Origin: Octopus sinensis
Lineage: Eukaryota
Length of the DNA: 64,000 nt
Assembly (NCBI RefSeq): GCF_006345805.1
Contig: NC_043009.1
Coordinates: 56,916,001-56,980,000 of the forward strand
Direction: 5' to 3'
The notes under the pieces were generated by a model. It saw only the letters and a list, made by a program, of their open reading frames with translations. It ran no database searches and was not told the DNA's origin. This document shows, one piece after another, positions 6,135-46,252 of the stretch; within the stretch, counting starts at the first letter, position 1; every line of letters starts with the position of its first letter. A program made the translations under genes and the position numbers.

Positions 6135-6149
6135 CTAGAGAGCGTAAAG
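6135..6149 (-). CDS. Micro-exon, 15 nt: (A)LRSL
   Basis: Acceptor gtttttattttttag|CT, donor CTAG|gtaagt; positionally paralogous to the 18-nt exon. Confidence 0.72.
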   Translation of the reverse strand, partial: LYAL

Positions 6150-7263
6150 CTAAAAAATAAAAACAAACAATTTAATAATATTTTTAACTGATATCAACAC
6201 ACACACACACGCACAGACAATCAAAAATGGGCGTGCAATTACAATATGTAAGATAATTTTTGTCCTTCAGTAGTAACTGTTATTTCTTATTTGCTTACTA
6301 CTAGAAATTATGAAAAATGGCTAATATTTACTTCAAGCTTTGCTTTTGTTACTTTTATTCAAACCTCTGAAAACCAGTCGCAACACATGGCTCTGATGCT
6401 CCCCCACCATTCCTGCTCATGATCAGAGAGATACACATATTGGAAGTCATTATGGAACATTCTCAAGTGGTTAAGGTCAAGCAACTAACAAGCAAATATT
6501 TGGTATGAAAGAGAATATTTTCTATAACAATGTCTCTTCTCCAGCAAATCACCACCTGAATCTGTCTGAAGTATAATTGGATATCGGTCAGTCTCAAAGC
6601 ATTGATGTCAAAGTCGCAAAAGCAAAGTTTGAAGGGAATAGCAGCCAGTTCCTTTGATTTCTAGATAGAAGCAAACTGAAAATAACACTTACTGACCAAA
6701 GGCAACAAAAAAAATTGTTACACAATGTTATATATACAAGCAAATTGCACTAAAAAAATTGTATGAATGCAGGTAATTAAAGAAACATAATAAACAAATT
6801 ACATACAGAACAGAGGGAATTGAGAATGTAAAGACTATGACCCACATCTAAGGACTGAAGCACATGCATCAAATATGATCTACACATGAAGCTTGTGATT
6901 CACATGTGAAGACTCCAATCCAGATTGGAAGAATGTGATCCACCATGTCAGAAGAATGTGGTCTACAATTTAAACCATTGCTATCACAATAAAAGCTGGA
7001 AGATATCATAGATTCTGGACATGTGTCACTAAACAAGCCTTTACACAGTTTCTCATCTTGCTACAGATACTAACCAAATATCCCTATTATGATATAGCAC
7101 CAATTAAAAAAAATTAGACAAAGCATTCGATTTCAAAATAATATGTGACGATAAAAGAGAGAATTGCAAAGGCTTCATTGTCTTTGACCATAAATGTATG
7201 TCATTAGAACTTAATCACAGCCAAACAACAACAAAGAGAACATGAGAAAAGAAACATTCATAC

Positions 7264-7296
7264 CAGTTAGGGTCCTCTCAATGTCATCTGAAACAC
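7264..7296 (-). CDS. Micro-exon, 33 nt: (G)VSDDIERTLT
   Basis: Acceptor tttttcttttgtttag|GT, donor ACTG|gtatga. Confidence 0.75.
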
Positions 7297-7439
7297 CTAA
7301 ACAAAAGAAAAATATTAATTAGGAAATGAAAATATAGTCTGTGCAATAGCATATTAAAGGGTGTGTGTGTGTGTGTGTGTGTGTGTGTGTGCAAATGTAT
7401 GCTAGTACCACCTGAATGGCACTTGTGCCGGTGGCACAT

Positions 7440-7760
7440 TGAAAGCATCATGTGAGGATGGTCGATGCCTATACTGCCTCACAGGTTCCTATGCTGGTGG
7501 TGTGTAAAATGCACCATTCAAGCGTTGTCAATGCCAGTGCCACCTGACTGGCTCCTGTGCTGGTGGAATGTAAAAAGCACCCACAATACTCTCAGAGTGG
7601 TGGCATTAGGAAGGGCATCCAGCTGTAAAAGCCTTGCCAGATCAGACTGCAGCATGGTGCAGCCTCCTGGCTTGCTAGCCTCAGTCACACCATCCAACCC
7701 ATGTCAGCATGAAAAGTGGATGTTAAATAATGATGATGATGATGATGATGATGATGACTA
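7440..7760 (+). mobile_element. RTE 3'-tail-derived short element ending in (GAT)n; copies at about 13180-13550, 13810-14130 and 61095-61240 (+), about 8560-8870 and 63480-64000 (-)
   Basis: Shared core ggcattaggaagggcatccagctgta..gccagatcaga..ccaacccatgccagcatggaaa + (gat)n, the same as the 3' UTR of the RTE copy at 25058-25982. Confidence 0.75.
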
Positions 7761-7874
7761 TGACGAGATATGCGTATGAAACTCTGTATGCATAAATTTC
7801 ATTCGTACATTAACTGTGTCTTTTAACATACGACAGGATTGTCATGAATGGAGTGCTTGTAACCATAAATCTAT

Positions 7875-8550
7875 ATTCTCATCAAATCATATTATTCTGT
7901 GACCCTGAATTTGGAAACTTGTCGTAGTTGCATTTAATGAGTACAAGCTAAATAACCCGTAATACTACTCCCCACTACCACCACTTCTGTTTCGAAATGT
8001 GAGGAATTTAAACCCCACACATCAAGGTATCGTACTTTGAGTCACATAGAAATAGAAGCTAAGACAGAGTCTTCCGGTGAGCAGTCAAGGGTATTTTCCA
8101 CTACCGCTGACTCTGATACTACCACAAGCCCCATAATTCAGTCAGATACTAGAGCCAAACATCTCATCACACCCCAATCAGGTACTACAGATCATTACTG
8201 GCAACTACCTCTCCTCCTAAACACAAGTATAATTTCAAACCTGGGAAAATATATCCCTTGAATGGAAATTGTGACCAAGCTAATGTACTGTATGAGTGTT
8301 TGGTACCTTTCTGGTTCTATCACTAGATCTTAAACCAGATTGATTACTAATCCTGTGAACCTCAGAATCTCAACCCATAGACACGCTCCTTGTAATGATA
8401 GTCTGAAATCCAATATCTTCTTAGCTGAACATTTTCACTCACTCAATTCCGAAATGCTTGGTTCAGGCCAAGGCCCAACCTTCTAGTGGTAGCAAGATAT
8501 TTTGCAAACTGCATCTTCTTGAAGTTCTGTTTGTGGAATAATTGTAACAG
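7875..8550 (+). mobile_element. Penelope-like element relic (RT thumb/linker/GIY-YIG); copies at 9590-10430 and 14650-15405
   Basis: WCNPPFANN..HRYYIIFD (thumb/linker), YPLNGNCDQTNVLYK and ITRSYIRLITNPVKLKITTHRH..LAEHFHSL (degenerate GIY-YIG). Confidence 0.7.
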
Positions 8551-9072
8551 ACTAACTATCAGTTAGCACATAAAAAGCATCATTCAAGTGTGGTCGATGC
8601 CAGTGTCCCTGGACTGGCTCCCATGCTGATGACACATAAAAAGCATCATGTGAGTATGGTCGATGACAATGCCACCTGAGTGGATCCCATGCTAGTAGAA
8701 TATAAAAAGGACCCACAACACTCTCAGAGTGGTTGACATTAGGAAGGGCATCCAGCTGTAAGAACTTTGCCAGATCAGACTGGAACCTGGTGCAGCCTCC
8801 AAGTTTACCAGTCCTCAGTCGAACCATCCAACCCATGCCAGCATGAAAAGTGGCCATTGAATAATGATGATGATGATGACGATGACGAGATATGCGTATG
8901 AAACTATGTATGCATAAATTTCATTCCTACATAAAATGTGTCTCTTAACATACGATAGGATTGTCATGAATGGAGTGCTTTTAACCATAAATCTATTTGA
9001 TTAGGGCAGACTTGCAACAAAAAAACAAACAGAACATGGTAACAGGATAATAATATTAAAATAAATTCATAC

Positions 9073-43893: not shown

Positions 43894-44112
43894 TACGAAG
43901 GAGTGCTGAAAAGTTCCTGGCTTTGGGTAAAAGAAAATACAGGAGGATCAGTTAATTATAATGTTATTCAACATATCCCCCTCATATTCACACACATATT
44001 GCAACATCTTTCAGTTTTTCTAAGCCCTGCAAAAGAACTCGGGAGATTGGGCCTCCAGCCAGGCCTTTTGCTATACCCGTAATGTCAGGAAATTTTCAGC
44101 TCTCCCCTTGTA
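43894..44112. mobile_element. Mariner-type MITE, about 220 bp
   Basis: TIRs TAcgaaggagtgctgaaaagttcctg / caggaattttcagctctccccttgTA with TA flanks. Confidence 0.75.
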
Positions 44113-44479
44113 TGTGTATACATAAGAATATGATATAAATAATATATATCTATAGGACAGCCCTGAAAGAAAAGAAGGATGATCATGTGTGGAAAAGAAT
44201 GATGGACAATGGTCACATGTGAGCAATGAGAGAGAGTAAAGGAGAAAGAGGGAGAGAGAGAGAGAGAGACAGACAGACAGACAAATAGACAGGCAGACTG
44301 ACAAAAAGGCAGACAGACAGACAGATAGAAAATGGTGAAGGGGAGAAAAAAGGAATTAGAGAAAGAATGAGAGAGAAAACAATAGGTGGGGGAAACAGTA
44401 TAGAGTAGAGTTGTATCAAAAACATTAAAATAAACTTACTTGGAAATAATATTTATATTATTTATATTATTATTTGATT

Positions 44480-44790
44480 GAACACGATGCAGTCCTGAGG
44501 GACATGGTCTCATGGACCCACGTTTTCATCGGAAACAACACCATGAGAAGACCTCTCATCCAACCTTACTCAGGACCTTATTGTGTTCTTTCTCATTCTA
44601 ACAAACATTTCACCATTGACTGTGGTGGTTCCAGAGACACTGTCTCTGTTGATAGACTTAAAAGGGCCTATACAGATGCACATACCCAGAAACTTCATAC
44701 ACCCTCTACACACACTACTTCATATACATCTTCCCCACCTCCACCCATACATGGAATGACAACCTGTAGAGGCTGTCACATCCATAAGTC
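44480..44790 (+). mobile_element. Gypsy LTR-retrotransposon integrase C-terminal relic
   Basis: PLIQPYSGPYCVL..FTIDCGGSRDTVSVDRLKRA (GPY/F module). Confidence 0.75.
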
Positions 44791-45224
44791 CATGAGACTT
44801 TGCAAGATTATATATATATATGAACTTGCACTAAATGACTGTCGTTTTCTCATTTTTGTATATTTGCCTTTTATTGTATTTGTAATATTGCTTTTCCTGA
44901 TGTATTTGTGTATTTACCTTCTTTGAACATTTCACACTGCATTTTTTTTTCTGCATTACTGTTGCATGTATCAATTTGCAATGTCAGTGAAGGGTACTGT
45001 AGCAAGTCAGAAAAGCTATTTTTGTTATCATATTGTAGCCTAGTTCTGCAATAGCAACTCCAACCAGCCAGAGCTGAGCACATATTAATGCCAAAGGCAG
45101 CTCTCTGACCGAGAAGAGTTAAGTGGGTGTTTGGACCAGTTAGCAAAAAGACAACAAACCAGCAACATTGGCTGTTAAGCATAGGAACTGCCCCTTTGTT
45201 TTTCTGACCAACTTTGCACTGCTA

Positions 45225-45475
45225 GCTCTGAATTATATCAATTTCTTTACTACCCACAAGGGGCTAAACACAGAGAACAAACAAGGACAGACAAACGGAT
45301 TAAGTCGATTATATCGACCCCAGTGCATAACTGGTACTTATTTAATCGACCCCGAAAGGATGAAAGGCAAAGTTGACCTCAGTGGAATTTGAACTCAGAA
45401 CATAGTGGCAGACGAAATAACGCTAAGCATTTTGCCCGGTGTGTTAACGATTCTGCCAGCTCGCCGCCTTCGCTC
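45225..45475 (-). mobile_element. tRNA-derived SINE (second family); further copies at 54120-54745 (three in tandem) and about 60945-61090
   Basis: Reverse complement gives gagctggcagaatcgttaacac..gttctgagttcaaattcc..cctttcatcctttcggggtcgat. Confidence 0.8.
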
Positions 45476-46105
45476 TGAATTATATCAACCCTCAACCCAA
45501 CTCACATCATGAACAACCTATTTCATTCATGCCAAATTCTGAATAACATCAGCCCACAAATCTGGCTATATCATGAGCAGTATATTTTTGTTTCCACTAG
45601 CACCGTTTTTGTTAGCTTAAAACAACATCCAACTGAATCCATTTTTCCAATGTAAGTTATAAAGCTTTCTCTGATTCATGCACATACACCGGCTATGTTC
45701 ATATAACTTGTCAGCACTCGTTATCCTTTAATAAATTAAAATATTTTATATAAAAATGCCTTCTGATATTTTCATTACACTCACTTCTCAAAAGCTCATT
45801 TACAGGACCTCTCAATGAACACTTACACTAAAGTGGTGATCCTTTATCAACATTCTCTCAATAAATATATATACAATATACCAAAATACACATAGAGAAA
45901 GAAGTACCAAAAAAAACTGACAAGATAGACTGATAAGAAAGGAAAAAGGGAATTGATAAAAAGATGTGACACCAGGCAAATTTTTTTAAAAACTTCAGAT
46001 TAGATTACATCAATCTTCATTTAATTATCAGTTATTGGAATAAAGACATATTCTATCAAGACAATCAAATAAACAAAAGACAATTCTACACAATAAAATT
46101 ATTAC

Positions 46106-46252
46106 CTGGACATTTAAAGTCAGTTTTCCATTGTTGATCATCACCACATATTAATTTCTGAGAAGTTTCAAATGGTAACATACACTCACTGCCAATGATT
46201 GTTTCACGGCAGTTTATTTTTCTGTTGCAGTAGATAGTAGTTTTGTTACACT
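46106..46252 (-). CDS. Exon, 147 nt, sushi/CCP-like domain 1: (E)CNKTTIYCNRKINCRETIIGSECMLPFETSQKLICGDDQQWKTDFKCP
   Basis: Acceptor ttttccaatccctccag|AG, donor CCAG|gtaata; 6 Cys with C-x5-W-x5-C end typical of sushi domains; N-glycosylation sequon NKT. Confidence 0.85.

Follow-up and report, generated by a model that had tools for sequence, protein, structure and literature searches.

The stretch analyzed here (64,000 nt, hereafter the window) lies at ~56.9 Mb of Octopus sinensis chromosome CM016871.1 and carries a modular gene on its reverse strand. In a protein search, the joined candidate exons matched O. sinensis XP_036364299.1 (E=2e-95), whose gene locus is identical to the reverse complement of the window and whose RefSeq name, “ribosome-binding protein 1-like”, is misleading. 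Spliced mapping showed that 13 of the 15 minus-strand exons proposed in the initial annotation are coding exons of this model base for base, including the end at 6135, so the proposed modular exon set is real; the gene itself, described there as hidden, was already present in RefSeq as XP_036364299.1, with its 5' half as XP_029655600.1. All in-window RefSeq coding exons are entered in phase 1 and have lengths divisible by 3. The ATG that opens the CDS of the model lies within exon A (46181), and the model's KCPPVCPN junction is not reproducible with GT-AG ends on the window sequence. The RefSeq model is a prediction that presumably has a transcript basis.

The modular layout is as had been described: cysteine-rich ectodomain modules bearing glycosylation sequons, each on its own phase 1-1 exon, and then an extended low-complexity stretch encoded by small symmetric phase-1 exons. 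Exon A (46106–46252, minus strand, as are all exons below; 147 nt, phase 1-1, AG/GT) encodes the third 48-aa six-Cys module (CNKTTIYC...KCP), and exon B (43589–43768; 180 nt, phase 1-1, AG/GT) encodes the fourth together with a PVVKIDPSKSK linker. The RefSeq model continues with a 42-nt phase 1-1 exon (39358–39399; RRSRTPSATSNGR), three copies of a 66-nt exon (a, 28915–28980, TAKSPQVGGNGEQSTQQPNQG; b, 27977–28042; c, 26167–26232), a K/E/G/N-rich 123-nt exon (24360–24482), a 90-nt exon (17946–18035), a 27-nt micro-exon (copy a, 13737–13763, NGKKLPPP), an 18-nt micro-exon (11136–11153, TASVL), the second 27-nt micro-exon (copy b, 9073–9099, EEKKLHSP), a 33-nt micro-exon (7264–7296) and a 15-nt paralogue of the 18-nt exon (6135–6149), which is the last coding exon in the window. 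Of the 12 RefSeq exons in the window, all symmetric, seven are 15–42 nt long; most of the coding sequence comes from the 66–180-nt exons and the four domain exons. Four further coding exons of XP_036364299.1 (75, 21 and 75 nt, and a 5-nt terminal piece) are found beyond the window start; the RefSeq protein has no transmembrane (TM) segment.

The splice-site pattern by itself is not above chance: 15 phase-1 candidates with strong splice sites were counted on the minus strand, versus 10–18 in the other phases or on the other strand. Addition of a polar-composition filter left 8 phase-1 minus-strand candidates versus 0–5 elsewhere. Because the splice-site statistics do not exceed chance, it is the independent gene model, together with homologous exons in paralogues, that confirms the exons.

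Exons A and B are 73% identical at the protein level, carry the sequons NKT (A) and NVT, NRT and NCS (B), and align with 16 further module copies from seven octopod family proteins. Across these 18 copies the module has 48–49 residues and six Cys in the pattern CP-x5-C-x5-C-x8-C-x12-C-x5-W-x5-C, with four Cys and the Trp invariant and the third Cys present in at least 90% of copies. Sushi (CCP) domains have ~60 residues and four invariant Cys (paired 1-3 and 2-4), and an invariant Trp precedes their last Cys; selectin SCRs, like the octopus module, have six Cys. Like the sushi/CCP/SCR modules of CD46, the selectins and C1r, the octopus module occupies one phase 1-1 exon, is small, all-beta and probably disulfide-bonded, is arrayed in tandem, starts with “CP” and has an invariant Trp ~6 residues before the last Cys; unlike them, it has 48 rather than ~60 residues and six Cys at other spacings. 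The term “sushi-like”, as applied to these exons, finds no support in sequence: neither exon A, exon B, the two combined, three query proteins nor the 18 domain copies matched PF00084 at E≤10, and no PDB sequence match to the modules was found. The AF2 model of a single module (pLDDT 85.7) has five short strands and its best PDB match is at E ~1. With a two-module model, the best Foldseek match was an E-selectin chain with two SCR domains (E=0.019, probability 0.89), a borderline value, followed by C1r, PAPP-A and MASP-1, with TM-scores of 0.2–0.27; no Foldseek match to the module models reached E≤0.001. A TNFR Cys-rich domain, after the UniProt name of the O. bimaculoides relative, was also considered, and no TNFR family appeared among the Pfam matches of two query proteins at E≤10.

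No exons for a signal peptide or an N-terminal module are present in the 17.7 kb upstream inside the window. These features are found in XP_029655600.1, on the unplaced scaffold VCDQ01002432.1; this model comprises a signal peptide, an N-terminal Cys module (modelled poorly, pLDDT 40–57) and two 48-aa domain exons, and terminates in an intact phase-1 donor with the same sequence as the donor of exon A. An assembly gap of 100 N (47092–47191), located 840 nt upstream of exon A, adjoins an inverted duplicate sequence. Within the gap and its adjoining 550 bases (46519–47191), the 3' end of the scaffold matches positions 47067–46519 beside the gap in the orientation of the gene, at 91–95% identity; past this overlap, the scaffold runs into a (TA)n repeat and then a terminal palindrome, and its end is an assembly artefact. 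In O. bimaculoides, a single protein (A0A0L8H5C1) contains all four modules along with homologues of the 42- and 66-nt exons. The RefSeq gene is probably split in two by the assembly gap, the scaffold and window exons forming a single gene across it; we infer the joining of the two halves, since the overlap is only 91–95% identical and the scaffold end is artefactual.

Much of the tail consists of duplicated exon sets (66 nt ×3, 27 ×2, 18/15, 42 ×2, 33/21 and 75 ×2), whose segmental duplicates are 83–98% identical. The two proposed exons that are absent from RefSeq are themselves paralogous copies in which a canonical splice site has mutated. The 30-nt exon (30656–30627) lies in a second copy of the 42-nt exon (30615–30656) and uses an internal GT, the donor of this copy having changed from GT to GA; the 21-nt exon (13059–13079) is a paralogue of the 33-nt exon in which the ancestral acceptor AG has become TG, a nearby AG having been taken instead. 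The array arose through tandem segmental duplication, in which symmetric exons were copied along with their introns. Comparison of paralogues revealed 72% identity in flanks and 51% in exon bodies, random 50-mers giving 47% (Fisher p=5e-11, or 3e-7 when restricted to independent pairs). The micro-exon bodies have diverged to background while their intron flanks remain ~70% identical, a pattern expected if the signals defining the micro-exons are strongly constrained and the peptide that they encode evolves under relaxed or diversifying selection.

The gene belongs to an uncharacterised, octopod-restricted family of receptor-like Cys-rich glycoproteins, in agreement with the lineage restriction suggested earlier: a search of 1.84 billion representative proteins recovered homologues from octopods alone (Octopus, Argonauta). 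Every match at E≤1e-10 was octopod, and the only two others, both weak (E=4e-5 and 5e-4), were to long repetitive proteins. Its members, all uncharacterised, include LOC115229376 and LOC115218344 (O. sinensis), CAI9732128-31 (O. vulgaris), A0A0L8H5C1 and A0A0L8GVR5 (O. bimaculoides) and GAB1601623/GAB1601604 (Argonauta hians). The O. vulgaris paralogue CAI9732128.1 has exons of 3×147, 75 (TM), 4×93, 90, 54, 27, 15, 27, 27, 13 and 19 nt, all but the last entered in phase 1, and this layout recurs in the O. sinensis paralogue LOC115218344, where the TM exon is 105 nt long. The window gene shares with the family the 48-aa module on 147-nt phase 1-1 exons (found here, on the scaffold and in the paralogue), the N-terminal Cys module of the scaffold half, and a tail whose small duplicated exons are all in phase 1 and whose micro-exons have homologous flanks. 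Unlike the two mapped paralogues, its RefSeq model lacks a TM exon. The tail content cannot be aligned with that of the family save for a short PPxxxS[IV]LY......P stretch, and the three 66-nt exons and the 123-nt exon have no counterpart in the mapped paralogue.

In both mapped paralogues the tail exons follow the TM exon, and their tails are therefore cytoplasmic. The 27/33/21, 18/15, 75, 90 and 42-nt exons of the window align through their flanks with post-TM exons of the paralogue (local scores 36–71 versus a background of 8–21), which suggests that the tail of the window gene is probably cytoplasmic as well. A candidate TM exon of 111 nt (43412–43522, phase 1-1), absent from RefSeq, would precede the tail exons and follow the last Cys module. 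It lies after a well-formed 66-nt intron (GT...CTAAC...pyrimidine tract...CAG), has a GTTTGT donor as on paralogue TM exons, and encodes (V)CLVSFFGASFSMCILVY then RLYMYTSRDTRRSSGLKWY, with a mean Kyte-Doolittle hydropathy of 2.09 over 18 aa and a basic flank. At the nucleotide level it showed no similarity to the paralogue TM exon (42–55%, equal to background). The gene may keep a TM segment by way of this exon or may make a secreted form, as RefSeq implies. A T-rich intron can mimic a hydrophobic open reading frame.

The data presented above have led us to favor, with some confidence, a reading in which the window holds the 3' two-thirds of one O. sinensis gene of the octopod receptor-like family, with a tail that is built from duplicated symmetric exons and is probably cytoplasmic. 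The full product would start with a signal peptide and an N-terminal Cys-rich module, continue with four 48-aa six-Cys modules, each on one 147-nt phase 1-1 exon, and end in a polar, charged tail. Modules 1 and 2 would come from the unplaced scaffold, with exons A and B supplying modules 3 and 4, and the Cys modules would form a ligand-binding ectodomain. The tail, presumably disordered and encoded by ~16 small symmetric phase-1 exons, would be homologous to the tails that lie in the cytoplasm in the paralogues; its array would have been built by tandem segmental duplication, two copies having since lost a canonical splice site.

The initial annotation had instead placed the tail outside the cell, as a stalk resembling the STP region of CD46 or the products of micro-exon genes (MEGs), in a secreted or surface recognition protein whose symmetric exons are mixed into many variants. 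That any subset of the phase 1-1 exons, all multiples of 3, would remain in frame is in keeping with this proposal, as is the faster evolution of exon bodies than of flanks, expected of a variable interface; moreover, with the scaffold signal peptide and no TM segment, the tail of the RefSeq protein would be secreted. Against it, the paralogues have a TM exon ahead of the homologous tail exons, several of which share their splice flanks with the window exons, and the Arg-rich 42-nt exon resembles a juxtamembrane stop-transfer segment. The 261-aa tail is not mucin-like, as S+T+P make up only 24.5% of it, with K+R at 16%, D+E at 14%, and K, S, Q, N, G, P and E at 8–11% each. Combinatorial splicing has no support among annotated isoforms, there being one RefSeq protein for the gene and paralogue isoforms that differ at the N-terminus only; both exons absent from RefSeq are copies with broken canonical splice sites. 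We regard an extracellular, combinatorial stalk as unlikely.

Somewhat less probable still is that the locus is a decaying or partly artefactual fragment that has lost its 5' and TM exons and lies in a repeat-rich, poorly assembled region, where false haplotype duplications have lengthened the run of exons. The gap with its inverted duplicate, the 17.7 kb devoid of 5' exons, the two dead exon copies and a 1.24-kb duplicate, 98.5% identical, that contains the second 42-nt copy could all be read in this way; so could the dN/dS of 0.74 for exon A versus exon B, a value consistent with relaxed constraint, and the finding that neither query matched any O. vulgaris protein. However, a 335-codon reading frame stays open over ~16 spliced exons in sequence with a random stop-codon frequency of ~6.8%, both modules keep all six Cys and the Trp, and most duplicates are 83–96% identical rather than nearly identical and lie in differing contexts. 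The O. vulgaris paralogue, from an independent assembly, shows the same kind of fourfold tandem exon repeat, and the unplaced scaffold both provides the missing 5' exons and overlaps the gap edge.

The STP region of CD46, which separates its CCP modules from its TM segment, is built of Ser/Thr/Pro exons subject to alternative splicing. The octopus gene likewise places small in-frame exons after a series of Cys modules; unlike the STP region, its tail is low in S+T+P, probably lies on the opposite side of the membrane, and gives no sign of cassette use in annotated isoforms. Schistosome MEGs contain short symmetric exons of 3–81 bp separated by long introns and encode secreted proteins (PMC10526429, PMC4350168). 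The octopus gene resembles them in its run of very short symmetric exons (15–42 nt) with kilobase introns, in its fast-evolving exon content and in its restriction to one lineage. No sequence homology to a MEG family was found in the search described above. In MEGs, which vary by exon skipping, short exons encode the bulk of a small secreted peptide, whereas here they supply the tail of a receptor-like protein that is large and modular; the paralogue micro-exons come after a TM segment, and alternative splicing of the octopus gene is conjectural. An upstream acceptor at 39441 would yield an 84-nt form of the 42-nt exon, matching the O. bimaculoides model.

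The reverse complement of the window is identical to the window gene locus (L002), O. sinensis CM016871.1, 56,899,625-56,972,181, a window coordinate c corresponding to position 56182 - c of that locus. Its GC content (30-48%) and its repeats, with LINE ORFs and numerous microsatellites, are those of an animal genome. A stop-to-stop scan of the minus strand yielded two related Cys-rich segments whose exon boundaries were set from the DNA: exon A (46252-46106, minus strand, 147 nt) and exon B (43768-43589, minus strand, 180 nt), each with a pyrimidine tract and AG before it, GT after it, and phase 1 at both ends. 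The product of each is one 48-aa module containing six Cys and a single Trp; the modules are 73% identical, with the sequons NKT in exon A and NVT, NRT and NCS in exon B. For the remaining exon lengths listed in the initial annotation, AG...GT segments open in phase 1 were enumerated, and the best candidates were joined and searched against a protein database. The sole match (E=2e-95) was XP_036364299.1, an O. sinensis RefSeq protein called “ribosome-binding protein 1-like” and encoded at the window locus. Spliced mapping of this protein placed exons of 180, 42, 66, 66, 66, 123, 90, 27, 18, 27, 33 and 15 nt in the window, all entering in phase 1, with the CDS starting at an ATG within exon A and the final in-window exon ending at 6135, where the feature first described begins. 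Four further coding exons (75, 21 and 75 nt and a 5-nt terminal piece) lie outside the window. Of the 15 minus-strand exons of the initial annotation, 13 are thus confirmed base for base by an independent model; the gene, described there as hidden, is already annotated in RefSeq as XP_036364299.1, under a name that reflects low-complexity similarity only.

Splice-site patterns by themselves are insufficient to establish these exons. Strong-splice-site phase-1 candidates numbered 15 on the minus strand versus 10-18 in controls, and only the addition of a polar-composition filter sets minus-strand phase 1 apart (8 candidates versus 0-5). At the exon A/B junction (window 46105/43769) the RefSeq protein reads KCPPVCPN where GT-AG splicing would yield KCPVCPN; the RefSeq reading requires non-canonical intron ends on the window sequence, AGGT..CCCT or GGTA..CCTT.

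A search with the Cys module identified XP_029655600.1 (LOC115229376), encoded on the 104-kb unplaced scaffold VCDQ01002432.1; this model opens with a signal peptide and an N-terminal Cys module of 49 aa, after which come two module exons of 147 nt each. This protein terminates by read-through of a donor identical to that of exon A. The 3' end of the scaffold matches window 47067-46519 in gene orientation, a stretch adjoining a 100-N gap (47092-47191) that lies 840 nt upstream of exon A, and beyond the matched stretch the scaffold breaks down into (TA)n repeat sequence and ends in a palindrome. In O. bimaculoides a signal peptide, an N-terminal module and four modules, the fourth resembling exon B, occur in the single protein A0A0L8H5C1. 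These comparisons lead us to infer that one gene, interrupted by the assembly gap, probably accounts for both XP_029655600.1 and XP_036364299.1, each being one half of it. The 230 bases beside the gap (46859-47091) are found in both orientations on the unplaced scaffold, forming an inverted repeat, and the palindrome at the scaffold end is perfect over ~900 nt and typical of a long-read assembly artefact (L001 34478-35264 and 35500-36430).

The modules had been described as sushi-like, and the resemblance is real. Their alignment follows CP-x5-C-x5-C-x8-C-x12-C-x5-W-x5-C, in which the Trp and four of the Cys are invariant, and they are like Sushi domains in the CP start, the Trp before the last Cys and the encoding of one module per 1-1 exon. 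AlphaFold2 predicts five short strands for a single module (pLDDT 85.7), for which Foldseek gave a best E of ~1. When the N-terminal module was modelled together with two six-Cys modules, pLDDT was 83-91 for the latter, with the N-terminal module poorly predicted; in Foldseek this model placed SCR-containing chains on top, led by E-selectin with two SCRs (E=0.019, probability 0.89) and followed by C1r, PAPP-A and MASP-1, with CD46 SCR1-4 at E=2. None of these matches reached 0.001, and TM-scores were at most 0.27. PF00084 was absent from a Pfam scan of the proteins and 18 module copies at E<=10, Pfam scans of modules and full proteins gave no TNFR match and only sub-threshold CIMIP3 noise, and neither the O. 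bimaculoides protein nor a module profile matched any PDB sequence. By sequence the module is not a Sushi domain, and the likeness falls short of membership.

Among 1.84 billion representative proteins, searched exhaustively with HMMER, eight relatives lay at E<=1e-10, all from O. sinensis, O. vulgaris, O. bimaculoides, Argonauta hians or Logan contigs, and a profile search of a 5.8-billion-protein set with the module alignment found one Logan fragment only. Neither of two protein queries found an O. vulgaris orthologue, and a literature search by four accession and locus identifiers returned no paper on the family. The family to which the locus points is small, octopod-only and made up of Cys-rich receptor-like proteins. 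Two paralogues were mapped to their loci. The exons of O. vulgaris CAI9732128.1 are an N-terminal exon, three of 147 nt, a transmembrane (TM) exon of 75 nt, four of 93 nt, which form a 1.9-kb tandem repeat, and then 90, 54, 27, 15, 27, 27, 13 and 19 nt; those of O. sinensis LOC115218344 are 24, 192, TM 105, 204, 186, 174, 36, 30, 30, 31 and 19 nt. In both, each internal exon enters in phase 1 and a low-complexity tail comes after the TM segment, for which reason the tails are read as cytoplasmic. The O. vulgaris annotation drew on Iso-Seq and RNA-seq evidence (PMC10700109). LOC115218344 (L004, CM016871.1 60.47-60.55 Mb) lies 3.5 Mb from the window (56.9 Mb) on the same chromosome, and the O. 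vulgaris family members CAI9732128-31 are numbered consecutively and share one chromosome.

The 27/33/21-, 18/15-, 75-, 90- and 42-nt exons of the window gene align with the post-TM exons of a mapped paralogue through their intron flanks, at local scores of 36-71 against a background of 8-21. The tail of the window gene is therefore homologous to a cytoplasmic tail and is itself probably cytoplasmic. Its composition (S+T+P 24.5%, K+R 16%, D+E 14%, N+Q+G 26%) is polar, charged and low-complexity rather than mucin-like, in agreement with a cytoplasmic tail. This homology and the S+T+P content speak against the extracellular STP-like stalk proposed initially. What stands of that proposal is a modular, lineage-specific surface-type gene with small symmetric exons; wrong or unsupported are the hidden gene, the STP-like extracellular tail and the combinatorial splicing. 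The gene encodes an uncharacterised modular receptor-like protein of familiar kind, made of phase 1-1 exons. A candidate conserved tyrosine motif in the tail was discarded: in one paralogue, the O. sinensis copy has Cys in place of the Tyr.

No hydrophobic segment is present in XP_036364299.1, and homology searches with the TM peptides of the paralogues and the TM-exon DNA of one returned microsatellite and repeat matches only. Scanning for hydrophobic exons of phase 1-1 turned up one good candidate, of 111 nt at 43522-43412 (minus strand), 66 nt past the exon B donor. The 66-nt intron before it starts with GT and ends in CAG, with a branch-like CTAAC and a pyrimidine tract between them; the candidate encodes (V)CLVSFFGASFSMCILVY, with a mean hydropathy of 2.09, and then RLYMYTSRDTRRSSGLKWY, and its donor, GTTTGT, is the hexamer found at the TM-exon donors of both mapped paralogues. 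Read-through past exon B stays open for 84 codons versus 3-17 for 15 other exons, a length with a chance of ~0.003 for one exon and 0.04 over 16. Past exon A, the homologous sequence carries a frameshift and stops, as it would had the A/B duplication copied a module-plus-TM unit of which one copy then decayed. Set against this, T-rich introns easily yield hydrophobic ORFs, and the candidate is absent from RefSeq and unlike the paralogue's TM exon at the nucleotide level. We put forward as a hypothesis that 43522-43412 may be a TM exon missing from the RefSeq model; were that so, transcripts that skip this symmetric exon would encode a soluble form. The annotation corrections that follow from the locus are that two RefSeq loci are probably one gene, that the protein name is misleading and that a TM exon is possibly missing.

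Two other hydrophobic regions were rejected. A “TM” region of the O. bimaculoides protein, partly aligned to A/T-rich sequence upstream of the 42-nt exon, meets in-frame stops in both copies there, and the hydrophobic C-termini of the family proteins P0005, P0009 and P0001 (GKRNLNALS..., GNNFIV*) represent read-through past a module-exon GT donor. The ending of several database proteins of the family, P0005 and P0009 among them, also present at L003 54920-55006, is GKRNLNALS and a hydrophobic run from this donor read-through (GGTAAGAGA...), the first nine codons of which are conserved between paralogues and species.

Self-alignment showed that the exons lie, together with their introns, in tandem segmental duplicates: the three 66-nt exons in units 89-96% identical, the 27a/27b exons (83%), the 18/15 exons (84%), the 33/21 exons (82-83%), the 42-nt exon and its copy (98.5%) and the 75a/75b exons (95%). 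Exons A and B are also a duplicate pair, with similarity extending into both introns. The two exons of the initial annotation that are outside RefSeq belong to such duplicates. The 30-nt exon (30656-30627) lies within a 1,237-nt duplicate, 98.5% identical to the segment with the 42-nt exon, in which the donor GT of the copied exon has become GA and the 30-nt exon ends at an internal GT. The 21-nt exon (13079-13059) is a paralogue of the 33-nt exon whose ancestral acceptor AG has become TG, a neighbouring AG having been taken in its place. Both are best read as dead copies, with weak use of the substitute sites possible. A notable feature of the family is exon arrays that expand via tandem duplication of symmetric exons, with dead copies left over.

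Uniform phase had been taken to signify a combinatorially variable stalk. Tandem duplication keeps the reading frame only for symmetric exons, a restriction that explains the uniform phase without combinatorial splicing. RefSeq has one protein for the window gene, and the annotated isoforms of one paralogue differ at the N-terminus only. Eight homologous micro-exon pairs were compared between the window gene and the O. vulgaris paralogue: identity is 69% in the upstream 50-nt flanks, 74% in the downstream ones and 51% in the bodies, against 47±5% for random 50-mers (Fisher p=5e-11; 3e-7 on five independent pairs); the bodies have thus diverged faster than the adjacent intron sequence. The first Cys module shows no such contrast (exon 73-80%, flanks 71-78%). 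The micro-exon pattern fits a combination of constrained exon-defining signals and a peptide that evolves in a relaxed or diversifying manner, or changes through indel slippage. Of the results, this one alone leans toward the idea of variability, but as evolution between paralogues, not splicing. It seems to us rather improbable that the tail of this octopod-specific receptor family is a set of micro-exon cassettes, with constant intronic flanks around 5-11 residues turning over faster than neutral intron, in which skipping of single exons, all symmetric in phase 1 and the TM exon included, could vary the tail or make the product soluble instead of membrane-bound. Were it true, a modular receptor would have acquired a cephalopod counterpart of the micro-exon genes of schistosomes. 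Saturated micro-exon bodies with conserved splice flanks offer a usable case for the recognition and evolution of very short exons outside vertebrate neurons and trematodes, and one that does not imply regulated or combinatorial splicing.

The window also contains three LINE-type retrotransposon ORFs with endonuclease and reverse transcriptase, at 1536-4667 (minus strand) and, antisense in introns of the gene, at 21155-24289 and 34085-36017 (plus strand). A 152-aa ORF at 49229-49687 (minus strand) has a weak, sub-threshold match to a Tc5 transposase DNA-binding domain (E=8e-4). Dispersed short repeats at 39560-39620 and 30820-30880 (minus strand) and at 7465-7779, 13234-13506 and 25101-25732, some with a tRNA-like GGGATTGAACCC core, are probably SINEs; they recur often in the window and related loci and are the source of most cross-locus nucleotide matches. 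The largest spurious ORFs of the window, of up to 265 aa, come from long compound (TATG/TACA)n and (TA)n microsatellites at 17000-17870, 46280-46740 and 50430-51240.
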